A stretch of DNA of 63,236 bases, filler included, from Lenisia limosa (Eukaryota; Protista; Breviatea): NCBI GenBank assembly GCA_001655205.1. It is 12 parts of 12 records of this genome, joined end to end, with 100 filler letters (N's around TTAATTAATTAA, not from the genome) between each part and the next. Parts side by side here need not be neighbours in the genome. Positions count along the whole stretch, not along the records: positions 1 to 17,064 come from LPNZ01005553.1; 11 more parts are not named here. One strand, 5' to 3'. A program made the position numbers and the translations under genes. Position 1 is the first letter of the stretch. Every line of letters begins with the position of its first letter. Shown here in pieces: positions 1-17,064 of the stretch. Under the pieces are notes generated by a model that was not told the origin of the DNA, did no database searches, and saw nothing but the letters and a program-made list of their open reading frames with translations.

Positions 1-149
1 AAACAACAAAACAAACAAAGCCCAGATCAGTCGCATCTGCAGCACTGCATCCCATCATTTGACTGATGAATACTGGCGGAAAGGTGGGATTCACGAATCC
101 GAATTGGAAGGTAAACACAGGGAAAATGAAGTACACAAACCTGAGTAGA

Positions 150-793
150 GCTCAAGGGCATGAGTCCGGGAGGGAGGGCAGTTACGGCCGCGTCCAGACC
201 GCCAACAACAGGCAGACCGCAGGCATGACGAAGGGAATTAATGAACTCTGCAGGGAAGATTTGACGAGTCTCCCAGACATCCAGTGTGCGGGTGACGCGG
301 TTCTAAAAACAGTCAAAACCAACATTCTACCGACAATCAACACCACATCAATGGTACTTAATATTGCCCAAAAAAACCCCAAACCTGGTCACTGGCTTCC
401 ACGCTGTTGTAGATCAGAGGAAGGCAATCTGGTAGAACTCGCTAAACAATAAGCCGTGAATTGAAAGCAAAAGGCCTACAGCAAATGGGGTGGAGAAATG
501 TTTTCCCTTCCTCTTGGAATTCTGTACAACATCATTGCAGACGTAAAGATGGAGAAGTCTGTGTGACGGAGTGCCTTCATGAGTTAATAGCAAGAAGAAG
601 GGGAAACATACTTTTTTCGAGAGAACGCTTCCAAATCTTAACAAGCTTCTCAGACTCCTTCTTGTTGTACACCATCCAAGCAGAGGTGCCTGCAAGGTGA
701 AAAAGGATGGCAGTTGCCAAACAAACTTTCAATACTGTTCTGTGTCCCAACTAAGTTAACCAGCATCTTTTGAAACTTCTCAAACTTCGCCAT
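150..793 (-). CDS. RPRD1: RPRD1/Rtt103-like CTD-interacting-domain (CID) protein, 5' part; continues beyond window start
   Basis: Spliced exons read MAKFEKFQKMLVNLVGTQNSIE, GTSAWMVYNKKESEKLVKIWKR, RLLHLYVCNDVVQNSKRKG and ENRVTRTLDVWETRQIFPAEFINSLR. These match the CID pattern (YLANDVIQNSKRKG; RV..IW.ER.VF). Confidence 0.85.
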
Positions 794-1074
794 TTTGACG
801 AATCAGCGGACTATTATTTCAGTGAATTCAAAAAATGCTCGGGGTTTTCGAAAAGGGAGAACCGTTCGTATATCTAGAAACACTAACAATACGTCTACTT
901 AGCAATAGTATTTAAAACCTTGTAAATTCGTGAACTGGAACAAAAACGGTGAAAAAGGGTGTAACATGGGGGTTCTATATTAGGTCTTTTTGGAAATTTC
1001 TGTTTCTTCTTGGCCTCTCTTCAGGCTAGTTCCCCTCTAAATAGTACTCTGCATATTCCAATAATTGAACGACA
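794..1074. promoter_or_regulatory. Probable bidirectional promoter between RPRD1-like gene and NOC2
   Basis: About 280 bp separates two head-to-head start codons. Inferred from the arrangement only. Confidence 0.55.
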
Positions 1075-4000
1075 ATGCCAGCTCCCAACAAACGGACGAA
1101 GAAGTTTGAGAAAGGTAAGTTTTGCACGCATGCATCCCTCTTTCCCTCTCTTTTCCCTTAATATATATAGCACATGGAGGTAATATCTTGAAGAAGAAAA
1201 TTAGTCAGCGAAAAGTACGCTCTCGCGTTACCAAGCAGAACACCGAACGTGATCTCAAAGCACTTGCAACTGAGAACCGTTTAAAGGAACAGGAGGCTCA
1301 AGATGAAGAAGAAAAGTTTGCCTTGGGGATTGTTAAAACTTTGAATTTTGACAATTTGCTCTTTCTCTTGTTTTACCTCTCCGTGTTACTCCTTCTAAAT
1401 GGTTTTTCCAAAGTTGAACTAGGTAGTATCATGGTGGGCTGTATTGTATCATACACTGTCCTTTATGTGCCAATATGAAACAATATTGACGCAAGCAGGA
1501 AGGAACTTGAGGCAAAGGAAGAGTTTGCTGATCTGAAGGATCTTGATGAGAGCGACTCCGATGAGGACGAGGACGAGGATATGTCTGGTGATGAAAAGGA
1601 GAAGTTGAAAGAGAAAGACAAGTTACAGGTTGGGAAGGTGTTAATTACAAAATGATCTTTTGATTTTTTTTGTACGATAATGATTTAGAAATTGATCAAC
1701 CAATGGGCTGAAGGAAACGACGCCGACAGAGTTGCTGGACTTCTTCTCATCAGACGTCTATTCATCGCAAAGCCTTCGATGCGTGATGCCATTCTCAGAG
1801 TAGGACGCTTTGGGCGTCACTTTGGTCCTTTAAAAGCCGTTGTCATTTTTAAACAGTGATTCTATACAGCTAACTGAAATCCAACTTACATTGTCCCAAA
1901 TCAGATGAAGTTTGCAACCCTTGATCAATATTTCAATATCCATATCCGAATCGATCTTATGAGCAACAAATTATGACCTTCCAGAAAATGTACACTACTT
2001 TCATCCGCGTAAGCTCGGTGGTGAACACCCACACTGCTGCCGGAATTGGTTTTATGATCAACGGTATTTCTGAGATCTTCGGTGAGGACACAGACGCCGG
2101 GCACCGAAGGGCCTTCAACTCTATCAAACAACTAGCTGTTCATCTGAAGGCTGCGGTGAGGAGCAAAGGGGATTTCTTTGGAAAATCTAGTTTATTTCTC
2201 CTCTTGGGAACTATCTTCCTTTGATTTTGGTCCACTAATTTACGATCACAATCTGCTCTCTCATTTGCTTTCTTGCACTGACTGGATCAGCTTACACAAA
2301 AAGACGAAAGTCACAGAGTGTATAACTGGCAAGTTGTCAATGCTCTCCGACTTTGGACTAAGGTCATTTGTACTCACGCTACTAAGGTTGGTTCATCTCG
2401 TGATTGTTCTCTTTGGGGCTCTAGTTTAGCAATAAAAATAGACTGACATCCGATTTCCACACTGTCTGATATGTGAGTATTACAGTATGTCATTTTTTTC
2501 ATACACCCTCCTTTGACATTTTAGGGTGACGTCAGTGACCTCATTTACCCCCTGGTTCAGGTATGTTAAGGACCGTTCGGGTACACGAATTTTAGGTAAA
2601 TTTGCGTAAATTTTGTAAAGAAAATTAAGTTTCAAGTACCTACTAGGTGGTACTTAAACATTCGTAAATTTACTGTAAAATTTTGGAAACCCGAATGCGA
2701 ACTTTAAAATTTTACGTAAATTTACGGAAAATTCGTGTACCCGAACGGCCCCTTATACTATCATATAGAAGGTTATACTGGCCGGAGCCGTCCACNNNNN
2801 NNNNNNNNNNNNNNNNNNNNNNNNNNNNNNNNNNNNNNNNNCAACTCTGTGCACACAGCTTTCTGCGTGCCTCACAAGCATACGCCTTTTTTAGTCTCCG
2901 ATGCCATCGGATAAAGATGTGTGTCATATTGGTGGTGCCTAATACACCAGATTATCCACGGTATCTCCCGCCTCATGCCGACACCCCGTTTCTTCCCCCT
3001 CCGTTTCCACTGCATTGGCCTTCTCAACGACATTGCCGCCGCGACTGGCTCGCATGTCCCTGTTGCTGCTGACCTTCTCGAGGTTTGCTACGTGCCTTAT
3101 TCTTAACCTCGTGATTTGTTGTACGATATTGAATTCCAATCACCCCTCAGGTCCTTGCACACCCTTCCCTTCATAAGAAGCCCCAAGGAAAGAACCCCGT
3201 GTATGATTTCCGCCTCAACATCAAGGCTGCCGCCTCCACCATTTCCACCAAACTCTATATTGTAGGAACACGAAAGCTATGTCAAATTAACCTTCAAACT
3301 GTATCGTATGATATAATCTGATGATATTCAAGGCTTCACTTTGGTTCGAAAAAAGACTGGATTTCCCGATTAATCCTCGAAAACTATCGATATTTTATCG
3401 GTCTTTTTCGAACCGAAGTGAAGCCCCAATGGTATTGATATCTTTTCTTTTGCTGGGGAACTGAGAAATGAGAAGTTCATTGTAATCCAGGACACCTGCA
3501 TCAACACAGCACTTACGCTTCTGGCCGAGTCTGTGGCAACGTTCTCCACCTCCATTGCCTTCCCCGAAGTTTCCATCCCTATTTCCAACTCCTTAAACAA
3601 ATTCAAGCGCACCATCAAGGTTGGCCTCGGAATACTTATAATTGTCGTTGAAAAGCCTTGCACTAAACTCATCAAATCGTATCATTCCGGTAACTTTGGG
3701 AGACGTCTTGATATGATGCTCAAATCTACAAATATTTTCACGTTTCTAATCTACCAGTCTCCTGTGTTCCGTAAAAAGGCTGCAAACTTTGCTGAAGCTA
3801 TTGAGCAGTGTGTCAAGGTGCGAGGGGGCGTAATTGTCAAGACTCTTTTTGTGGCATTTGTTGTGTTTTGCTCATCTTTTTAGATCTTGAGAAAGAAGCG
3901 TGCGGCAGTTAACTTTGCCCCTTCTGATACTATTAAGGTTTGCTTTATGCGAATTCTGAATAGATTGTGAACAGTTTATAATCTCAATAAGACAGCATAT

Positions 4001-4989
4001 TTATAGGCTCTTCAAGCGTCTTGTATTCTATTATACGATTTGTTTAAGAAGCATAACTTACCTTGAGGCGATTGGGAACCTCTAGCATCCCATTTCTTCA
4101 TAGAAGCGCTCCAGTTCTTTTTAATAGCCATTGAGGAAAGAGGCTTTTTTACAGTACACTCCATTATATAGAGGCATATATAGTCTCCGATGCTGGATTG
4201 TTGTCGGGGATTTGTCGAAATAACTACGTTTTTTTTTTTTCGGACAAAGCGTATAGCTGCGGCGTTTCTGTAGTCAACTCTATGGCCTGACAATCTAGGT
4301 CGAGAAGTTTGCCAACGAAATGGCTGAAAAGGGTGTGACTATGGTGAGTGAGCCATTTTTGAACAAAAATTAAAAAAAATTGAAGCAACACAATCATCTT
4401 CAACTCTTCCAAAAACTCTTGTGTTTTTAAAGAAATGACCCCCCTCCCCCCCAGGTCTCGGACCTCGCTGAAAAGTGGCGAAAGGAGGAGGAAGAGGCGC
4501 GCAACCCCGACCTGGAGCGTGAAATTCAGAAGACTCGCGCCGCCGAGGCTGAGGAGAGCGATGACGGAAGCGACGAGGGCGATATGGACATGGTGGCAGA
4601 GTCAGACGACGACGAATCAGGTTTGGCTAAATGAGGTGTTGTTGGTTTTTTTTGTGGCATGTTGACAGTTTTAAGAGGGGCAGTCATGTTGGTGCAGAGC
4701 ATGTGGCATGTTGACAGTTTTAAAAGTGGCAGCCAACTACACGTTCAGAAAGAATAGTTTTATACGTTTACGTTTATCATGGCGATTGTATAGTTGAGAA
4801 TATAAAACATGGTTGGATTGTATTAGGATACCATACCATATGAGATAAAAATCAAGGATTAATCGAGAAAATTAGTTTTTTTTTTGGGACGGAAGTGACT
4901 ATCTGAATGTTGATGCCCTAGGTTCTGATGGAGCGGAAGCGGAAGATGCCGTCAAAGACCTGGAGTGGAGTGATAGTGATGACGAGTAG
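1075..4989 (+). CDS. NOC2: Nucleolar complex protein 2 (multi-exon)
   Basis: Start MPAPNKRTKKFEK. Motifs KMYTTFIR...GIGFMINGISEIFG...RRAFNSIKQLAVHLKAA, LIHQIIHGISRLMPTPRFFPLRFHCIGLLN, FSTSIAFPEVSIPI and KKRAAVNFAPSD. Acidic C-terminus ...DLEWSDSDDE* with TAG at 4987-4989. Confidence 0.9.
2569..2752. mobile_element. PIF/Harbinger (Tourist-like) MITE in NOC2 intron
   Basis: TIRs aggaccgttcgggtacacgaattt / aaattcgtgtacccgaacggcccc, flanked by TTA on both sides (2566-2568, 2753-2755). Confidence 0.85.
3329..3428. mobile_element. hAT-type MITE family A (~100 bp) in NOC2 intron
   Basis: TIRs ggcttcactttggttcgaaaa...ttttcgaaccgaagtgaagccc. 8-bp flanks atgatatt / atggtatt (7/8). Confidence 0.85.
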
Positions 4990-5347
4990 AGGTTTCTTAG
5001 AGGTTCTTGGTTTAGCGATTCAATTCTTTACATTAACTGAAACAAGGCAAACCTTCAATATGTTTTTTTTGGAGCATTATAAGAAATAATATCAGTACTG
5101 TGTGGAATGGGGTGGCTTGTATCTGCGTCGGATATTGTATGTATTTGTGTTTGAAGCGAAAATATCTTCATAACCAGTGGATGGGAACCACCCACAACCC
5201 TTGCCGCCACCGCCGGCCACCAAATAAGAAAAAAATTGGGTTAGAAAAGACGAAAAGACGAAAGGGAAAAAAGGGAAGCAACTGAACTCTGAGAAGAATC
5301 AAAAACAACACTGAAACTCAGCAGAAGACAAGAGATACTCGCTCAAG

Positions 5348-8300
5348 ATGCTCTTGAGCTTGGCTCTCCTCTTTATAGTGTCTATCACTTCGTTTGGTAC
5401 TAATGCAATGTAAGCGGCTATTTAACGAGAACCTCGCCACCACTCATTCTTCCACGATCCATCCGTCCTTCTTGTTCCATAAACCTGCCGGATTGGAACC
5501 ACGGTCAAGTGTTCTCCACATCCCCTTTTTATGGTTCAGATCTCTGTCATCAAACGATGTTGTTCATGCCACGAGCGTTGAAGTAGAGACACTCACACTN
5601 NNNNNNNNNNNNNNNNNNNNNNNNNNNNNNNNNNNNNNNNNNNNNNNNNNNNNNNNNNNNNNNNNNNNNNNNNNNNNNNNNNNNNNNNNNNNNNNNNNNN
5701 NNNNNNNNNNNNNNNNNNNNNNNNNNNNNNNNNNNNNNNNNACCCTGTATAGAACAAACTGGTGCCTATGTGGAGCTTGAACAAGATGCGGTCTTAAAGG
5801 TACATCAAACTCTTGATTATTATCATCTTCACAGCTTTCGGGATCAATCTCAACCACAATGACGATGGAGTATTGGTATAAGCTCTCAACTGTGCCTGTG
5901 GAACCACAAACTCATTTTTCATTGGTCACGGTAGGATACTTGACCACTCACATATAGTCAACACTGGGATATTAATGCTGTCTATTTATAAGTTGACTTG
6001 CAAGCTCTTATTTTTGTTAGAAATGTCCAACCAACACAGTTTTCCGGTTTCGGACAGATGCAAACTTTGACCGTTTCTACACACAAATATCAGTTCATTT
6101 ATCTTTGTAGATTGTTACATCATATGATATGCATTTGCCCACACCATACTTTTAACCCGTACAGGAGTCTGGAGAAGTTTCTGTTTCATCCTATCGACGC
6201 AACTCACTTCTTCTGGAAGTCAACGGGGTGAGCATGGGGCCAAATTTTCTCACAATATTAATTGTTTTTTACTCTTCGTTTTCCATTCATATGCCACAAG
6301 TATTTGAATGAAGTCTTAGGCTGGAGTGATTGTTCCGTTGAGATATACCTTGTTCGATGTTTGGCACCATGTGTCTATCAGCATCCAGCCCGGAAGTGCT
6401 GTGAGGCTTCTTCACGGTTTGTTTTTTGGGCCTTCACTGCCATCCATGACAGCTGAAAACAACATTTTTATGTTTACAAACCAACAATTGGCCTTCATTG
6501 GATCAAACGCTTCAGACTTCGAATTGGTGTCCGAATTAAATATCTTGCCACGTACCTTCCAGTCTAACTGCAAACTCTATTTGGGAGGAAGCGTCTCGAA
6601 TTACGCTGCACCGGTATGCTCTGCTATGCTATTGTCACAATTCTAATGTACATTATATGTCTAAGCAAGTTGAATTGATTAAATATCATTCAACAACTTT
6701 GGTTACTTGTCTTTAGGTTTTCGACCCCCTCTTTTCCGCAGCCATTTCTTTCCACAAAGTTCTTATCAAGTCAGAGTACACTACTGATGGTGGGCATCTT
6801 TGACTATTTTGAAATGCTTCGTTCTCTTTTGGTTTCTGTTGCTTTTAAGAAAGCAAAGTCCTCAATTGCTTACGATTTAGCTGCTGTTGTGAAAGACCGT
6901 GCATTCTCTGACTTCGCTGTGGTAAGGAGAGGAAGTTAATCAAGTTACCGTGGAGAGAGGAGGGGGGGCTCATCAAGAGATTTTTTATTTACTTAACACT
7001 ATAGGATGGGACCACTTTGGCATTCTTTGATTTTTCGATGTTTGACAGCGCAGTCTTTACAGTAGGTGGGAGGGCTGTGGGTCAAAGAAGGGTCATGGTA
7101 TAACTGTTTTATGTCTTTTGAGAAAAAGAAAATTACACGTTTTGGAATATCATATTTTGTTTTGCTCTGAAGCCCAATAGTTACTCTTTAGGGAGAAGGT
7201 CTGTTGACCCCGACGTTTGAGGTCAACCCAAGCGACGTTGCCACAGGTGGCCTTGTGTCCCAAAGAGTGGGGGGGGGGGTTGACAACGGAAGGCTTCGCT
7301 AGTGTAATAGGCTTCCCAACGGTCCAAGAAAAGACTACTTCCCAATAAATCCTCGATAAATATCGATATTTTGACGCTCATTTTCGGACCGCAGGGAAGC
7401 CCTAGTATACGCTTGTATGAACCTGGGGGCACTTTTCATGCTGAGAAGGTTAATTGATGCCATTTCCTCAGGCTTCATCCTATTCAGGTATTATTCACCA
7501 TCTTTCTGGTCCCAACAAACATGCTCCTTACCAAAACAAGACTGAATTTGATGGATCGTGGGGCTTCACTTCGGTTCGAAAAAAGACTGAATTTCTCGAT
7601 AAATCGTCGAAAACTGTCGATATTTTACCAGTCTCTTTTGAACCGAAGTGAAGTCCTACTAGATCATCAATCAATAAAATTATTATCCTTTCTTCTATCA
7701 GGAAGCCCAGGAGCCAGAGCTGTTAGTACTGTTTTTACTGTTCAGAGAGCAAGACTGTCTGACTTCCTCCGTATGGCATTTGAAACAAACCGTCAAATTG
7801 AACTTTTGAAAGAAGAGGTTGGTGTTCTCCCTTCTTCCTCGATGTTTCCCTTGTCTCAGCAAGGGTCTTGGGAAACACTGGTTCTGATATTTGGCTTTAC
7901 TGTACAAAACCAAAAACCTTCCTCTTTTAGAACACCAAGACTGTCATAAATGAAAACAGCGGCCTCAGCGCTTCAGTTCAGCCCGACGACTTGATCCGTG
8001 GGGCTTAAGGGGAATGACGTGGATTAACTTCTTAGAACCGCGAAGGGCTTTCAATTGTTACGGACGATATGCGGTTTTGGTGAGCTAAATCCTGAAGAGG
8101 GACATTACTCAAGCTTACATTGCTTATCTCATTTGTTAGGTACTATATATGATGTGTAATACATAAGAAGAACGTGAGCCGCTCAATTAACGTATTAGGA
8201 CTTGGCAGCGTATTCTTACCCGACAACCGAAACGACTTTAATTCTTCACTACAAAGTAACAGACGTAGGCCCTGCGAACGGAAGGAATCCGTTTTTATTA

Positions 8301-9556
8301 CATTACTCTGAGTGAATCTAGTTTTAACAAAATTTCTGTAAAAGGAATTGGTGTAAAAGGCTTCAGCCTGATGTTTTTTGTTGTTTTTTGCTTTTGCCTT
8401 TTTTTATTCTCCATTGCTACATGTCCCCTCTCAGATCTCTAGATCACCACCGTGAGCTCGCCTTTTGGGCTTGGTGGAAGCAATGACATCGCTCCAATGT
8501 TCATTTCTGGAGCGCTTAGATCGGTATGATGGGGGTNNNNNNNNNNNNNNNNNNNNNNNNNNNNNNNNNNNNNNNNNNNNNNNNNNNNNNNNNNNNNNNN
8601 NNNNNNNNNNNNNNNNNNNNNNNNNNNNNNNNNCCTCAGCTCTCATGCAGAAAGTGACCTTTTAGCACTTCAACGGAGTGAGCAAAGATTGGACCTCTTC
8701 TAACTTCTACGTGAATGAATGGGTGACGATGGTGGTCACGTGGAAGGCTGGCAACACGTATCTGAGAGTCAAAGACATTGATACTACTTTTGTGCTTAGC
8801 TCAGGCAGTCTGGAGCCAAATACAAACTTTAAGGTCTCCGTGGGAATGGTAAGTCAGATTGACCTGTTCATTTCTAGGAATATGACACAGACACGCCGTC
8901 GGACTATTTCAAAGGCAGCATAGCCCAGGTATGAGACCGGAATAAATACCACAACGCTTATTAGTTAATTATGTTCAATCCCACGAAAGATTCCTATTAT
9001 TTGCTCTTATCTGACCTTTTTTTGTTTCTTTTATGAATCCCCAGGCCTACCTTTTCGACAAGGTGCTCACGAGTGAAGAAATCGCTGACCTCGAGACACA
9101 GATGTTCTATAAACTGCCTGAGGAATCTGGCATTTCCTACATGTTCAGGTAAGCCATGTGACTTTGACCTGATAAATCCCAATTCAAGTCTAATTCAAGT
9201 TGGGTCAATCTGTAGCTTCTGGCTAATTTCCTCTAGAGGAACATATAAGGAGGATTGGATCGACTATGACAACCTCCAAGTGCAGTCCTACCCAGTATGC
9301 GTCTGAACAGTGATCAATATCGAGTACTCATTGGAGTTAAAACTTAACCTCCATGTTTCTTTGGACTTATTTCTGGTATCTAACTCCCCCAGGCAAACAG
9401 CACAATTGTCGCCAGCACCACTCCCATTGCTATGTACTATCCGTAAGGGGAGGGGGTGACAATCAGATCTCTTCACTGTCCTCTTCATATTCCTTCTACA
9501 ACTATATATCTTCCTGTGCCAAAAGTACAGTACCTGCATATTGTCTTCCTACATAG
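5348..9556 (+). CDS. Secreted protein with two probable LamG/concanavalin-A-like domains (multi-exon, internal gaps)
   Basis: Signal-like start MLLSLALLFIVSITSF. LamG-like segments TMTMEYW, DVWHHVSISI...KLYLGG, NEWVTMVVTW and AYLFDKVLTSEEIADL. Last exon ...AYCLPT*. Confidence 0.65.
7308..7404. mobile_element. hAT-type MITE, subfamily B (TIR tagggcttccctgcggtccgaaaa)
   Basis: taggcttcccaacggtcc...ggaccgcagggaagcccta, with the same core (aaatcctcga..tatcgatatttt) as family A. Partial B copies at ~27390, ~35261 and ~63163. Confidence 0.75.
7559..7658. mobile_element. hAT-type MITE family A
   Basis: Near-consensus copy gggcttcacttcggttcgaaaaaagactgaatttctcgataaa...gaaccgaagtgaagtccta. Confidence 0.85.
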
Positions 9557-9687
9557 GCAGTTTTTACTCGTGTAGTAACAGCCTCCCTCCCGAAGGCTTC
9601 GCAACCGTCGCCCCCCAGTGGCCGCAGTAATGTGGAGAGAGACAAAATTGCAATAATAATAATCGACTATGTACAGCATTGGAGAGG

Positions 9688-12600
9688 TCACGGGATGGTC
9701 CAATCAATGGGGTTGATACTGAGCAAATCATTGACGTTCTCGGAGAAGTTGCAGCCAAAGAACCCTAATGACATTATATGGCTGAAAAAGAGGGGAGGGG
9801 GGACGAAGGGAATTTCGATGAAGAATATTGGCTAAGTACTAATCCCGAACGAATAACCGTAAGGACACAAGAGGGTGAGTATGAGAAGGATATTGCCATA
9901 AATTCATATCAGCATGTATGAAATAATTTATGATATGGTATGCCTGTATTATATGATGTATCACTGAATAACAGCAAGAAAGAAAAGAGGGGAAGGGGAA
10001 AATAAAAATGAGAGAGAAAAAAGCCCTACCAGCTCGACAAGACAATGGCGAGGGGTGACTTGCTGGATGGTTAAATCGGGATCAAATATCCTTTCAAGCA
10101 GACTTTTTATTGGCAATTGTCCAATGGATGCAATGATAATAGAGAATGGGAACTGCGCTCACCAGAGAACTGAGGGTAGTCACAGCCTCCCTTCTTGGCC
10201 ACTTTCTCGTAAAACGCCTGAGCTGCCCCTCCAAAATTGAGCCAAACAGTCTCATCGGCAAGGCCATCTGGAAGTAAAAACGTGTTTCAAACATTGGTAT
10301 TCCCCTCTTCCTCTCCTCAACTCCAAAGAAAAATTGAACACTTGTAAGTATCAATAGCCGGCAACATACCTGCCAGAACATCGACCAGCCACTTATCCCA
10401 TCCAAACGACTTGTGCGAAACTGCAGAGATGAAATGAAAACTGTCGGGGAACAAGTGGACATATTATATGAAACAAAAAAAAGGCCCACAATCAACTTTG
10501 TTGGCTGATAACACGAGGGTTAAAAACAACAAAACAAAACCCAAGCCAGTTGCTTCTGCAGCACCGCATCCCAAAACTGCGGGGAAGTAAAAATGGAAAA
10601 AATAAAAAAGAAGATCATTGCGGATGAAATGCAAATGGTGAACTGGAAAAATGGACTGAAGCCTATTCATTCAAGAAAGAAGTGAAAGAAAAGAAACAAA
10701 AGGAAAGAATTATCGAAAGAAAGAAAGAATTTGGGAAAGAATCGAAGAAAGAAGGGCATACATATTTGACCACTCCTGACAGTGAGCGTTGTGTTCAGTA
10801 GTAGGACACCCTGGTCCGCCCACGATGACAGATCGCCATTTCCAGATGTCGAGAAACCACTGTTCTGGGGAGGGAAATAAATAAAAAGGACTTAACATGG
10901 GGAGGCAACTAGGGCTTCACTTCGGTTCCACAAACCGAACTCAAATTCTTGGGTTTGCATTCCCCCAGATATTGATGCATTTAAGTTCAAAATTGAAAAT
11001 CTTGAAAAAACCTCGATATTGATTAATCTAAACAGCTCTTAATTAATCAATAAACCATGTCTTGCTGCTTAAGAAGGGGTGAAGGGTGTGAGATCGGAAT
11101 ACTCTTGGTGATATCGATAGTTTTCGGGGATTTGTCGAGAAATTCAGTCTTTTTTCGAACCGAAGTGAAGCCGTATACTGAACCATTTAATTCCGGACCA
11201 ACCTCCAGTTCTGTACATAAGTTTTTGAGGCTCTTCGGGAGAGTGCCGGTACCAGAGTATGAGAAAGCCAAACCATCTGCATCACCAGGAGTTGGGTATG
11301 GGTCCTGAAATTATTGTGATAATATACCATAGTGATGAGAAAAAAACAACCTTCCACAAGCTCACGCAGAGAGATATTGGAACGATTATTATGATAGTTT
11401 ATTAAACTTAGTAATCATGATAACACTATTCCGAACACACAAGTGATGTTCAGGAGAAGTTGGAGACAGTATATCGAGAATATGGTCTATGACGACGTTA
11501 ACGACTTTGGATACACCGGCCCCAACCTGGCCTAAAAGAACAACAAGCGTGTCGTTTTGTGGGCACTTCGCGAAGGCTGCAAAAACCTTCTCCGGAGATG
11601 GGAAGATTTCTAGACCAATGACTCACGTGACGTCAACCAACCATTGGCATGAGCGTCAAGATTGATTTTATTGACAATCAGAGAAAGCTTGTGTGAATGC
11701 CTTTCGAACAGATCCCTCCAGTTGTTCTGTTTCAGTGAGTGTAAGAACAAGTTGAGTGAGATATTTCTTCATGCGAGAACCGCTTACATCTGGCACAGTG
11801 TTGATTAAATCATCAACGGTAACGGTCTTCCAGTCCAAGCCATGAGGCTAAATTGGTCAAAAATGATGATGTTAAGTATTGTAAGTAATTCTCTTGCACT
11901 TTCTTACTTAGATCTTCAAATCCCCGACTTTATCATAGTCAATACACTAACCTTCAGAGGTGAAGAGAACTCCGTTCTCACGTGGACTGAAATTGGGCAG
12001 TGGTCAGACCTTTAACGTCAGCCATCGTATAGAACGATAAACAAAACAAGAAACATAGACCGATAAACAAAACAAGAACACAGCCATTGTGTAGATAAGC
12101 AAAACAAGAACACAGCCATCGTACAGATCAACAAAACAAAGCAGTTTCATACCCTTGAACATGGGGATGGTGCTTGCATTGCGTCACATTTGGAAGGATA
12201 TTACTGGTTGTGAACACATGGTCAAGTCTCCATCCTGAATGAAGATGACTTGTGTACAGAAAGTCTCTTTAGACTCAACACGGGAGTCTGTAAAGAACAT
12301 CGAGAGAAACAACCATATCAGATCTTACCTGCTTTCTTTTCCGCTGAGCGGTTACTCCAAAAAGTGAAATTCTCGCAACACTGTGAAGATTAGGTAACAT
12401 TAGTAAGATGATGTTAACATAGACATCAGTATAATAGCTGCCAACCTCTCCATTCTTGTCAACCCAGGCGTCCTTCAGACCAATCCTCGTGCACATCGCA
12501 GACCAAGACTCTCTCTCAGCCAGGGTGAAGCCTGCTGTGTTCATCTGAGTTGGTTAACAAAGATCTGTTCAATGGTTGATGCATTTTTTAGCTTCTTTGA

Positions 12601-15600
12601 TACGTCGCACTGAAATGGTGTAATGTAACCCGAAATTGCCCGAAGCCTAGCAGACTAATAACCTTGGCTTCGCTCCTATCCAGAAAATGACCGAATTTTT
12701 CGATACGATAATTCAGCGATCTTTGGTACCAAAGTGAAACCCTAACAAAACCCATTCATACGTTGGACCCGGGTCGGGCGAGGTCATTCGAGGAAGGTGC
12801 AATCTAAATGATCAGGTCACTGGAGGTAGGATTTCAATCTAATAACAAACATGATTTCCTCGATAAATCCTTGATGAATGTCGAAAAACTTACGTTGAGA
12901 TCACCGATATAGAGAACTTGACAGGGGTCTTGCTTGAACATTGCCTCGACGTTTTTATCCCAGGTGTTGACTCTTTTATAGTGTCTTTCTCCAATATATC
13001 CCACATGTTCACATGAGGTTCTAAGACGAATTAAAGAATCATGTTCACAGGAGGTTCTAAGATGAATTAAAGAATCATGTTCACAGGAGGTTCTAAGATC
13101 AATTAAAGAATCATGTTCACAGGAGGTTCTAAGCTCAATTAAAGAAACTTTATGATCCTAGTTTCCATAGAGACTATGTTGCAAAAAAAAAAAAAAAAAA
13201 CCCACTTTTGGCCAGCATTTGGAACGTAGCATCCATATAAGGCAATTTTGTCACCGCTAGGACTGGGAAGTTGGGCTCGAATCATACGTCCCTCAGACTC
13301 ATACCTTCCAACTTAACGAGTTATCATAGTGCCCATAAGGGGACAGTTCCTCAATTGATTACCTTGAATACAGGTGACAGAGTCCAGAGCGATTGTCGAA
13401 ACCAGAGCCACCCCAGCGTATCTAAAGAAATAACAACACCCAAAAAAATATGAAAATATTATAATATGGAAAAATTTGAACAAAGCTAAGTCTGTTCATC
13501 CTTCCCCAATTTCAACATCGCATTTGTTACCCAAATGAGCATTAAAATACCCACAAACGCGCTGGTATGTGAGAGAGCCACATAAATGTTGCAATCAGGG
13601 AACTGCGTAGACAGAAGAAATAAATTGCTTTCCATAATTTTGAGCTCTGAAAATATAAAGAGCTGACTAGTTTTAGAACTCAAAGAGCAAATAAGAATTA
13701 TACTATCTGGAATGAATCGTGAGTCAGGTCCAAAAAAGAGATATTATACAGCAATTCAAGCGGAGCCCCAAATAATCATCAAAAACCTTAACCCCAAACC
13801 ATTGATAATGAGAATGTTCCAGGGGAATCCAGCCACTCCATCTCGAATCGCGATAGTCTATAAGAAAGGAGTCATGCTAGGTTTTTCTTTTTTAGGACAA
13901 GAGAAATAATATATGAGAAATCTAGGTAAACAAATAAATCAATAGGGATGTCATAATACATTACCATGCTCTCACACCCACTCTCTTTGACGCATATCAG
14001 AAGAAAGAGTAGAAATGTACATGTATATGTCCATACTATGATATAATACTCCCCATTTCCCAATTATTGTAGCAGTTTGTGTTTCAGACGAAGTGTGACT
14101 GACGTCAAGCCATATAACTTGGGCTTCACTTCGTTTCGAAAAAAGACTAAATTTCTCGATAAACTATCGTTATTTTCCCGGATCATCGAAATGCCCCTCT
14201 CTTACCCTAGAAAGCGCACGGAGGCCGTTAACGTTCCAAGAGACGATTTTGGCTACGTCAGCAGTTGGAGGATTCTGAAGGCCATGGTAAGCATATACTC
14301 CGTTCTGAGTTTTGTAGTCGGCTTGGACGGTATGCCACGACATTGGAGGGAGGTTGTCTTGGGGCAGAGGGTAGGAAACGGAACTGAATAACGTGCATTC
14401 TAGAGCAATTATTTAGGATTTCAAGCATTCTAGAGAGATTATTAGGATTTCAAGGAATTCAAGAGAGATTATTTAAAGGTTCAGGGTTTTTGAGAGATTA
14501 TTTAAGGACTTCAGCGGTGTCCTCAGACTGCTAGATTTTTCGATAAAATATTCGAAAACTATTGGAGAGAGCTCAAGACAATCTAAAACAAAAGAACCGA
14601 AAAAAAAGGGGGGGAGTCAAGGGAGGCAGGTGTTTACAAAAAAAGGTAACAATATCAGTCTACTACACAACAGAGATAAAAAGCATGAAAGGCATTACGG
14701 TGTCCTACCATCTTCCGCGATCATTTGGTCAGCGCTTCCATCATTGCCATCTTCATTGTCGAATATAAAGGCTTCTTGGTCTGAAATGGGTTAACCGATG
14801 CAGCTAATTCATATCTATCAGTATCCAGCTGAGATCTTGCTCCAAAAGTGTATATTTAAAAATGCTGATGAAAAAAAGGTTCAGTTTATCATTATCATAT
14901 CAAAGAAACCAGCAAAATATATCATCTCTCGTTGTACTTAGCTTCGCACCTGCATAAGAGGAGTCACCATAAGGGTTAGCAACTAGTTGTTTTGACGAAT
15001 CCTGGTACTGGGTATCTAAAAAGAATAATTCAAACTAATAAGACAATCCACAAAAAACATACTACCTAGATAGTAGAAAAGAACAACCCACTGACAAGGG
15101 TCTGAGACAGTACTTTGCATTTGACTGTACATTGAGAATGAGGGCTGAAGAGTTAGCTCAGTCATTATCTCGTAGAAATTGGTATTGGCCATCGCCCATT
15201 CTTTTTCTCATAATTCAGCTTGTATATGAAGGCTGCCAAGGTTCCTCCGCCCACGCTCCCGTTCATCGCTTGTCTCCAAGTGTCCGACCAATGCCATTAC
15301 CACTATTGAAGAAAGCAAACAGCTAACTCTCCACTTTGCATTTCAACAAGTGCATCATGTATATACACCTGCTCTTACCTGGGAAAATCCATTGGACACT
15401 GGTGCTTTGGCGTTTCCGCACCTGAATAGTCAGCTTCGAACGCGGACGCATTAACAGTTGGAGTGAAACAAACACGACTGAGACCTTGATGAATTCCTGA
15501 TAATAATATACCTGTCTTTTGAGTTTCAATAATTATGGAATCACCCAAGCATCTATACAGTGACCGGATAAGTCTTGACCAATTTTCCTTGGGAAATCAC

Positions 15601-15855
15601 ATAGCAAATCGGTCAAGACTTATCCCAGTCACTGTACATATATTCCGACCTTTCAAGGCTGGATGCAATTTGCTCGAAAGACATGCCCGAAAATGACAAC
15701 GAGGAGTCGACAGAGTTTTGGGGAGGTGCTGAAGAGCCCATAACGTTTTGAGGAGGTGCTGAAGAGTAGTTTTGAGGAGGGGCAGGTCCCGAAGCTGACA
15801 TAAACCGAGGCTTCAGGTCTGTGGACTTGCGGGCGGTTTGCTTTGTTCTTACCAT
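9688..15855 (-). CDS. ExoIII/APE1-family AP endonuclease fused to family-1 uracil-DNA glycosylase; upstream exon begins with a histone H3-tail-like peptide
   Basis: APE motifs: KIVSWNVNGLRA, ILIINELK, YAGVALVS, EGRMI, CYVPNAG, IGDLNV, AGFTLAERE, GWRLDH, GSDHCPI. UNG motifs: IFPSPEKVF, VVLLGQDPYP, GLAFS, PKSLKNL, GDLSSWADQGVLLLNTTLTVR, SHKSFGW, SHPSPLS, FFGC...PIDW*. The APE-UNG junction stays in frame using GT-AG introns. Linkage of the 14.3-15.85 kb exons is inferred. Confidence 0.88.
10910..11175. mobile_element. hAT-type MITE family A, long or composite copy in UNG-domain intron
   Basis: Left TIR tagggcttcacttcggttc at 10910. Reverse-oriented core plus right TIR ttcgaaccgaagtgaagcc ending ~11175. 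No matching TSD, so it may be two partial copies. Confidence 0.65.
12035..12140. repeat. Degenerate ~30-bp intronic tandem repeat
   Basis: gataaacaaaacaagaa(a)ca... recurs about 4 times. Confidence 0.6.
12664..12745. mobile_element. Degenerate MITE family A copy
   Basis: ggcttcgctcctatccagaaaatgaccgaatttttcgata...ccaaagtgaaaccctaa. Confidence 0.6.
13005..13148. repeat. 36-bp minisatellite, 4 copies, intronic
   Basis: Unit atgttcacaggaggttctaagatgaattaaagaatc. Confidence 0.9.
14119..14198. mobile_element. MITE family A copy, internally shortened
   Basis: ttgggcttcacttcgtttcgaaaaaagactaaatttctcgataaa...gccc. Confidence 0.75.
14395..14515. repeat. ~30-bp degenerate minisatellite, 4 copies
   Basis: gagagattatt(t)aggatttcaag-like units. 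Confidence 0.7.
15558..15634. mobile_element. Tc1/mariner-pogo-type MITE (77 bp)
   Basis: TA-CAGTGACCGGATAAGTCTTGACC...GGTCAAGACTTATCCCAGTCACTG-TA, i.e. CAGT termini with TA duplication. Confidence 0.88.
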
Positions 15856-16778
15856 CCTAGAAAAGATGTCATTGTACCTAAAATACAGGGGGGACTCCCA
15901 TTATACGTTCACATGTGATGTTGTTGGTGTTGGGTATATGTAAGTTAAAATGGCCTAATAATTTCATCGTCTTCTGACATATATTATGCATCATTATTCA
16001 TTGTTCCCTCCTAAAAACAAGACTACAATTTTCCTTGGAACGAGAAGATAACCACATGATTATCATAAGTATCTCTATGGGGTTGATTATTCTATGGGGT
16101 TTATTTGCCTTAATTTGAGATAAGAATATTGGTACAAAATGAACCTAATTAAAATCACCAGTTGGGAACATTATTCTATCATCAACATTGAGATTAGTAT
16201 TCTATCATCAGCAGATTGAGACTAGTATGTACACCAGCTTAACCCGTGATTCCTTCAATCTCCCATCATACTTAGCAGTGTAACACGTCCTTGACACCTT
16301 CACCGCCAAAAAGAAAAGGGGGGGGGGGGAGCGGGGAAATTTGGTGGAAGGTTCTCCCGAGGCTGCGGTCAGATGCCTTTTGGCGTTTTCTCTCTTCTTC
16401 ACCCACTCTCTCCCTCTACAACTGAATGGTTGAATGGAGCTGGAAAACAAAAAACAAATGAAAATGAAAAAAAAGAAAAAAGAGGAAAAAAATTTCGAGT
16501 CAATTTCGAGTCTTCGAAATTTCTCGATATCTCTATCACCAAACAGGTTTTACAGGTTTACAGGCTTCCCTTTTTGTTTTTGTTTTTTTGCCACCATTCC
16601 CTCAAATTTCTCTTGACTTTCAACTGACTTTTTCTTTTTATTACAACATTGTTGTGGAGTGCAAATGGAGTGAGTGACCACCAAGCCAAACCCTCCCTAT
16701 CTTTCCTAGCCAGTTGCCATCCCCCCTCATCTCCACTCTTAACAAACTTCTCGGCTTCACCGAGTATAAAGCTAAGAC

Positions 16779-16900
16779 ATGAGTATTGCGGGGGGTCTGC
16801 TGTCCACGCCGCCGACAGATGCTCCTTCCATCATCGAGACGCGTGCGGCAACTGCGTTGTCTGACTCCTTGTTTCCTGCAGTGGAGTTCTTCTTCTCGGT
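16779..16900 (+). CDS. PEX12: Peroxin PEX12-like, first exon (rest lost at contig end)
   Basis: MSIAGGLLSTPPTDAPSIIETRAATALSDSLFPAVEFFFS followed by a GTATG donor. Resembles the PEX12 N-terminal PSIFE..A...L....RPA motif. Confidence 0.55.
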
Positions 16901-17064
16901 ATGATGTGGGCCTAGATTACAACAGAGTACGAACTTATTTTTCTTCATCACAGTATTACTATCATACCCTCCTATACACATTTTCTATCACAATTACCCC
17001 ACGCATACACATAATCACCACCCAGACGAGTGGAGGATGGAGAATGGCAGGGTATAATACACAT

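Follow-up and report, generated by a model that had tools for sequence, protein, structure and literature searches.

Does a base-excision-repair enzyme of the protist Lenisia limosa carry a copy of the histone H3 tail at its N-terminus, and could this tail be recognised like that of H3 itself? The locus that raises this question lies in assembly GCA_001655205.1, within record LPNZ01005553.1, which supplies positions 1 to 17,064 of the stretch of DNA analysed here (63,236 nt, referred to as the window; all coordinates count along it). An earlier note had described an H3-like peptide behind a minus-strand ATG at position 15855, apparently at the head of a gene that encodes a fused apurinic/apyrimidinic (AP) endonuclease (APE) and uracil-DNA glycosylase (UNG). 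In polyA RNA, the exon encoding this peptide is joined by splicing to those of the enzyme domains, with the reading frame maintained. The best explanation, to which we assign a probability of about one half, is that the spliced APE-UNG protein bears an H3-like head that would be made and recognised like an H3 tail.

The question turns on three features of the first exon:

15650..15855, minus strand: exon 1, 206 nt (68 codons and 2 nt), with the H3-like head followed by a segment rich in S, P and Q; donor GT at 15649-15648
15853..15855, minus strand: proposed start codon in the context ctaGGATGG, the first ATG of the frame downstream of a stop in the same frame at about 15903-15901
15820..15852, minus strand: H3(1-11)-like peptide VRTKQTARKST, from the translation, with coverage by a polyA RNA contig from 15838 downstream

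Translation of window positions 15560-15900 yields, from ATG 15855 on the minus strand, an open reading frame beginning MVRTKQTARKSTDLKPRFMSASGPAPPQNYSSAPPQNVMGSSAPPQNS... The peptide VRTKQTARKST is identical to residues 1-11 of H3 at ten of eleven positions. R2, T3, K4, T6, R8, K9, S10 and T11 are retained, and the sole change is A1 to V. With residue frequencies taken from the six-frame translation of the window itself, the number of matches of at least 10/11 expected by chance over 34,064 positions is about 7e-8, and the second-best match to H3 1-11 anywhere in the window reaches 6/11. A search of exon 1 against PDB returned two matches in all, both of them H3 tail peptides and individually non-significant (E 0.59 and 1.3), in which the alignment extends weakly to K14, P16 and R17 with one gap. 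The Pfam Histone family (PF00125) gave no match to exon 1 at E values up to 1. Thus, both the peptide and its continuation into a low-complexity segment with three APPQN repeats, lacking a histone fold, are as the earlier note had read them. A weak lead is that clusters with Histone and PAF Pfam families are found among the language-model neighbours of this exon.

The three APPQN repeats are located at about 15789-15712, and a 30-nt tandem repeat at 15701-15760 encodes part of them. Between head and APE domain, the linker comprises about 180 amino acids, is rich in S, P, Q and Y, includes an acidic patch and is probably disordered. The region before APE is net acidic (20 D+E vs 10 K+R), with the basic residues found mostly among the first 20.

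Two sequencing runs contain the locus, namely a polyA RNA library and another that is probably DNA of the same project. In the DNA run, one contig spans 15612-17034 with zero differences from the window; this run is possibly the assembly's own sample and is therefore not counted as independent support. Of the words sampled from exon 1, 83% are present in the polyA RNA run. One of its contigs (3805 nt, depth 27.3) runs from exon 1 into the APE and UNG exons and aligns to the window in the following pieces:

15838-15648, minus strand: RNA contig positions 1-191
14399-14206, minus strand: RNA contig positions 420-613
13646-13559, minus strand: RNA contig positions 672-759
13311-13214, minus strand: RNA contig positions 819-916
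13020-12894, minus strand: RNA contig positions 925-1051
12544-12446, minus strand: RNA contig positions 1094-1192
11303-11203, minus strand: RNA contig positions 1614-1714

Since introns are skipped, the contig represents spliced RNA rather than DNA contamination. It carries 230 nt from the end of exon 1 to the start of the exon at 14399, for which four GT-AG exons account exactly:

15379..15421, minus strand: exon 2, 43 nt, with GT-AG flanks, an open frame and a depth bin of 41 nt plus 2 ambiguous nt
15096..15144, minus strand: exon 3, 49 nt, with GT-AG flanks and a depth bin of 6.72, equal to 49 nt
14950..15015, minus strand: exon 4, 66 nt, with GT-AG flanks and a depth bin of 9.05, equal to 66 nt
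14709..14780, minus strand: exon 5, 72 nt, acidic patch FIFDNEDGNDGSADQMIAEDE, with GT-AG flanks and a depth bin of 9.87, equal to 72 nt
14206..14399, minus strand: exon 6, the end of the disordered N-terminal extension and the start of APE (KIVSWNVNGLRA), from RNA contig positions 420-613

At a depth of 27.3, the bins of the four mini-exons are predicted at 5.6, 6.72, 9.05 and 9.88, and the observed values are 5.62, 6.72, 9.05 and 9.87. All five junctions from exon 1 to the APE exon are canonical GT-AG and leave a single frame open. This frame is that of ATG 15855; it stays open for 195 codons up to KIVSWNVNGLRA, where APE starts at residue 196, and continues into UNG. The chance of a 127-codon stretch remaining open is about 0.2%, and lower in AT-rich DNA. 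The continuity of the frame, which the earlier note had left in doubt, is thereby largely settled by one spliced polyA RNA contig with one open frame, its cover ending at 15838 on the 5' side. Of the several GT-AG exons that had been suspected between peptide and APE, the existence was borne out; they are fewer and smaller than described, namely four mini-exons and the exon in which APE begins. That peptide and APE share one mRNA is supported by the contig, which joins exon 1 to APE and UNG and begins just past the ATG.

Exons from APE down to 11203 were placed by the contig pieces combined with depth-bin matching. All 19 introns of the modelled gene are GT-AG. They measure 51-348 nt apart from one of only 32 nt (11641-11610, minus strand) between the UNG exons 11726-11642 and 11609-11527. 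This short intron is needed, because it restores both the frame and the conserved segment ...EIFPSPEKVF..., and RNA depth bins favour the same solution. An alternative UNG model with a 10-residue insertion inside GQ-DPY was rejected: the bins of 139 and 5 nt fit the 32-nt intron (139/5) better than the insertion (137/7). In total, the APE-UNG gene has about 25 exons, and exon 1 is the first coding exon seen.

The spliced model comprises 577 RNA-backed residues and was aligned with E. coli XthA and Ung. The whole protein, of about 710 amino acids, consists of the H3-like head, the linker, a complete ExoIII/APE1-type AP endonuclease and then a complete family-1 uracil-DNA glycosylase. The domains are laid out as follows:

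11952..14250, minus strand: APE/ExoIII domain, model residues 196-459, in 11 exons (blastp vs XthA)
14399-14206, 13857-13800, 13646-13559, 13421-13363, 13311-13206 and 13020-12894, minus strand: APE exons 1-6 of 11 (contig pieces and depth bins)
12803-12762, 12544-12446, 12380-12329, 12234-12153 and 12009-11952, minus strand: APE exons 7-11 of 11 (contig pieces and depth bins)
9688..11847, minus strand: family-1 uracil-DNA glycosylase domain (Ung alignment, PDB match, tblastn)
11847-11788, 11726-11642, 11609-11527 and 11304-11203, minus strand: RNA-backed UNG exons
from there to a stop near 9690, minus strand: about five further UNG exons, placed by homology only

Residues 2-267 of XthA align with residues 196-459 of the model (blastp, E 1.5e-10), and the motifs SWNVNG, NELK, YVPNAG, GDLN, WRLDH and SDHCP, which we assign as catalytic by reference to APE1, are visible in the translation. 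Full-length similarity and the motif set thus place the domain with the ExoIII/APE1 AP endonucleases. Single exons are less telling. The top PDB matches of exon 6 alone are exodeoxyribonuclease III/APE chains, at a weak E of 0.18; two other single APE exons gave nothing relevant in PDB, and Pfam searches with single exons, which are too short to score, gave nothing useful.

For UNG, residues 37-97 of E. coli Ung match model residues 517-577 (E 8e-14), the exon at 10891-10781 matches PDB entry 1okb (E 2.6e-5), and Ung 34-220 was mapped onto the locus by tblastn. A loose end of the RNA at 11203 reads into the exon starting at 10864. The motifs LLGQDPYP, SHPSPLS and GFFGCN are present; the domain has both the water-activating loop (GQDPY) and the leucine loop (HPSPLS) of family-1 enzymes, with its last five exons known by homology only. 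Past 11203, the RNA contig extends for a further 2091 nt (positions 1715-3805), and the remaining coding exons of UNG need about 400 nt. The excess is either a very long 3' untranslated region or a merger with a neighbouring or overlapping transcript. To our knowledge, APE and UNG are separate proteins in known eukaryotes. No report of an APE-UNG fusion was found in one search of the literature.

Does translation begin where the H3-like codons do? ATG 15855 has a strong context, with G at both -3 and +4, and no in-frame ATG lies upstream. The next in-frame ATG, at 15801 (M19), has a poor context with T at both positions. We consider it probable that translation starts at ATG 15855. The 3805-nt contig has no unmatched letters at its 5' start, and RNA depth is zero across 15876-16472 in the one polyA RNA run. 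The possibility raised earlier that the peptide is internal, owing to AG acceptors just upstream, therefore found no support: RNA is absent from that interval, and neither this contig nor a second one further upstream has a loose end there. The second contig appears to belong to another gene:

16592..16899, minus strand: probable last exon and 3' untranslated region of a distinct gene lying upstream (from the second RNA contig, 937 nt)

This contig encodes ...SRPPAILMS, followed by an in-frame stop near 16775 and AATAAA at 16642-16637. With this stop and signal, and ending at 16592 without a loose end, it resembles the 3' end of a separate gene. At 16899 it runs on into sequence from outside the window, and there is no canonical AG exactly at the boundary.

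How might the head act? Translation would begin at ATG 15855 and the initiator methionine would be removed, which we infer from valine being permissive as second residue. The resulting free N-terminus V-R-T-K-Q-T-A-R-K-S-T could then be read as an H3 tail. Readers of the PHD or ADD type would bind it by clasping the free N-terminus, R2 and the unmodified or methylated K4, and writers and readers directed at ARK(S/T) might act on K9 and S10. In this way, the base-excision-repair enzyme would be tethered to, or gated from, chromatin or the replication-coupled chromatin machinery. The head itself most likely descends from a real 5' coding fragment of an H3 gene.

There are published precedents. 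H3 N-terminal mimics have been defined by an N-terminal iM-Z-R-X-K, in which Z includes V, and are enriched among chromatin-binding proteins; residues that permit methionine removal in second position are A, G, S, C, T, P and V (PMC8166343). The Lenisia protein conforms to this rule, with M-V-R-T-K at the first in-frame ATG (outside the RNA contig) and the permissive valine. In PAF15, residues 2-VRTK-5 are held by the PHD finger of UHRF1 in the same way as H3 1-ARTK-4, with a Kd of 2.2 vs 1.5 uM, and this engagement drives the ubiquitylation of PAF15 and its loading onto chromatin at replication (PMC7060239). A synthetic peptide VRTKQTARK(me3)ST displaced H3K9me3 from the ADD domain of ATRX with an IC50 of 4.3 uM vs 7.6 uM for the wild type (PMC7181051, Table 5). 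Taken together, these data indicate that the head's sole substitution is tolerated by two different H3-tail readers (PMC7060239, PMC7181051). A replication enzyme, LIG1, bears an H3K9-like methyl-lysine mimic that is read by UHRF1 (PMC7585203). By analogy, it is plausible that chromatin writers and readers regulate or recruit the enzyme, as the earlier note had proposed. The fullest version of this idea is a working copy of the H3 tail, in which the enzyme would be written by methylation of K4 and K9 and phosphorylation of T3, S10 and T11, and placed at, or evicted from, chromatin states or forks by PHD/ADD, chromodomain and 14-3-3 readers. We offer this version tentatively, as a possibility and not an expectation.

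Several observations weigh against a head that is made and recognised like an H3 tail. Coverage by the RNA contig begins only at 15838, 17 nt past the A of the ATG, and consequently leaves out the ATG and the V-R-T-K codons. If transcription started within 15855-15838, translation would shift to M19 (ATG 15801). The sequence ATG-GTAAGA resembles a consensus splice donor, and an upstream ATG at 15872, 17 nt before the main one, opens a 7-codon reading frame (15872-15849, minus strand; ATG ACA TCT TTT CTA GGA TGG TAA) that overlaps the main start in another frame. Beyond residue 11, the likeness to H3 is almost lost. The RNA evidence comes from a single run in the form of assembled contigs, in which isoforms and rare variants are invisible.

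Relatives of the exon were also sought, and these searches count on the same side. With phmmer, no homologue of exon 1 was found among 1.84 billion representative proteins; the two matches returned proved on reading to be irrelevant low-complexity repeat proteins. A word-indexed search with the 80-residue open reading frame found no candidate. A scan of JGI metagenome contigs with exon 1 gave pattern matches and no relative, and the same scan with exon 6 gave 21 loci, which are generic ExoIII genes without the peptide. None of these 21 loci has RTKQTA, KQTARKS or TARKST at an APE gene; a lone TARKST in one of them stands in an unrelated frame context and was discarded. Purifying selection on the head therefore finds no support in these searches.

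The lack of detectable conservation in the databases searched also fits the alternative that survives best, according to which the head is translated and neutral. Here, a 5' fragment of an H3 gene (the start and 11-17 codons, perhaps with the promoter) would have been captured as a first exon, and the likeness would reflect recent origin; any benefit would come from an H3-type promoter or from generic basic charge. The likeness stops abruptly past residue 11, with faint echoes at K14, P16 and R17, as at a breakpoint. The rest of exon 1 is fast-evolving, as seen in the 30-nt tandem unit behind the APPQN repeats, and mobile elements are abundant around the exon. Against such a relic stands the intactness of ten of the eleven residues, the only change having occurred where valine is known to be tolerated (PMC7060239, PMC7181051). 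Furthermore, the flanks have diverged beyond recognition, a pattern that points to differential constraint provided that more than 11 codons had been captured, and the start-codon context and reading frame are preserved. We regard a neutral relic as unlikely, although it deserves to be taken seriously.

Less probable by some way is that the H3-like codons are not translated at all and belong to a 5' untranslated region or promoter, with transcription starting within 15855-15838 or translation at a later ATG (M19 at 15801 or beyond). The start of the RNA contig at 15838 would agree with this, and the upstream ATG and the donor-like sequence complicate the 5' end. De Bruijn contigs, however, usually lose the last tens of bases at their 5' end, so that a true start upstream of 15838 is to be expected. 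A strong-context ATG followed by a 10/11 match to H3 would be a remarkable coincidence in noncoding DNA, and the poor context of ATG 15801 makes it an unconvincing substitute.

A further alternative, which we judge improbable as an explanation of its own, is that the head serves mainly in nuclear import or targeting, being bound by H3-importing karyopherins or acting as a generic nuclear localisation signal or presequence, and is not a ligand of writers and readers. Its composition would suit this role, since the first 20 residues of the protein include six that are K or R and a single acidic one. In human APE1 and UNG2, the disordered N-terminus holds the nuclear localisation signals, and the tail of H3 also functions as a signal for import. 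However, a generic signal does not require 10/11 identity to H3, and the H3 residues that are key for karyopherin binding, about 11-27, are not retained here. Import is moreover compatible with an H3-like head that is read as a tail and does not exclude it.

Chance similarity, or an artefact of assembly or contig chimerism, is effectively excluded: the window consists of scaffold sequence interrupted by N runs and Logan contigs can join transcripts with common 30-mers, but the chance expectation is negligible, exon 1 is found in DNA and RNA contigs alike without differences, and the splice junctions from exon 1 to APE keep one frame open.

Compared with known systems, the proposed H3-like head is closest to PAF15 (PCLAF). 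Both proteins start with M-V-R-T-K, both act in replication or repair, and both have a lysine at position 15. PAF15, in contrast, is H3-like for about 5 residues, and the Lenisia head for 10 of 11, including the ARKS(T) module with K9, S10 and T11. PAF15 is also a protein of about 110 amino acids with a PIP box and no enzyme domain, whereas the Lenisia protein fuses two enzymes within about 710; a regex scan of its 577 modelled residues found neither a PIP box nor an APIM motif. The H3 N-terminal mimics defined by Chen et al. 2021, among them VRK1, BCL11A/B, SALL, FOG and MEF2, share the initiator methionine, the small residue after it, R2 and K4 of the mature protein and the position at the extreme N-terminus (PMC8166343). 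They are human proteins, mostly transcription regulators, and alike over 4-5 residues, unlike the 11 (faintly 17) residues of this repair fusion enzyme.

With LIG1 (K126) and the automethylation site of G9a, the head shares the motif A-R-K-S, here at residues 7-10 of the mature protein (8-11 with the methionine). Enzymes of the G9a/GLP type methylate this motif, and chromo and Tudor domains recognise it. LIG1 is, in addition, another enzyme of DNA metabolism that is recruited through an H3K9-like mimic (PMC7585203). In LIG1 and G9a, however, the mimics are internal and cover only the K9 neighbourhood, whereas the K9 module of the Lenisia protein stands in its native register behind an H3-like N-terminus. 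Relative to H3 itself, residues 2-11 are identical and K14, P16 and R17 can be aligned with one gap; the differences are valine in place of A1, the absence of a histone fold, and the low-complexity sequence that follows residue 11-17 and leads into two repair enzymes.

Human APE1 and UNG2 likewise have their catalytic core behind a disordered, basic and modifiable N-terminal extension, though one that is not H3-like. These human tails carry localisation and partner-binding signals.

Several repeats and other features were recorded at the locus and elsewhere in the window:

15566..15636, strand unassigned: high-copy short element with inverted ends in intron 1 (word depth of the DNA run, contig joints)
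3332-3426, 7562-7656, 11111-11172 and 14121-14163: copies of an element resembling a miniature inverted-repeat transposable element; weaker copies at 7308-7402 and 12665-12707
13004-13146: tandem array of a 36-nt unit in about 4-5 copies, in the intron that separates exons 13311-13206 and 13020-12894
14395-14484: 30-nt unit present three times in tandem, just upstream of and into the exon 6 acceptor (14399)
1479-1652 and 4431-4631, plus strand: acidic open stretches rich in E, D and K, in a region of positive GC skew

The element in intron 1 begins about 14 nt past the donor of exon 1. Joints and loose ends of DNA contigs cluster at 15566 and 15636, and the mean word depth of the DNA run is about 39,950 in bin 15478-15676 vs about 36-40 in the flanking bins. 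The transposable-element-like copies are palindromic, about 95 nt long (GGCTTCACTTCGGTTCGAAAAAAGAC ... GTCTTTTTCGAACCGAAGTGAAGCC), and located in introns in both orientations. In bin 11100-11298, mean word depth of the DNA run, summed over contigs, is about 111,000 vs about 40 for unique sequence. At the 36-nt repeat, the aligner cut the RNA piece, skipping 13175-13213 as repeat. The acidic plus-strand stretches may represent another gene. No RNA family was found in the window with Rfam.

Mimicry of the H3 N-terminus is a known kind of feature and an emerging idea, so far in the form of 4-5-residue likenesses in vertebrate regulators. What sets the Lenisia limosa case apart is the extent of the likeness, with both the K4 and the K9/S10 module in their native register, and the host protein, an APE-UNG fusion. 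If the head were a relic, it would be a case of exon capture from a histone gene that can be dated. On the practical side, where antibodies and reader probes for marks at H3K4, K9 and S10 are used in this organism, they could cross-react with this repair enzyme, whose mass is about 78 kDa (estimated from the length of about 710 amino acids). If the H3-like head is indeed recognised as a tail, it would couple uracil and AP-site repair directly to the histone code by molecular mimicry. The locus would then offer a natural test case, in which loss of the 11 residues should alter where uracil and AP-site repair occurs in chromatin, and would bear on what directs base-excision repair to its sites in chromatin and at replication forks.

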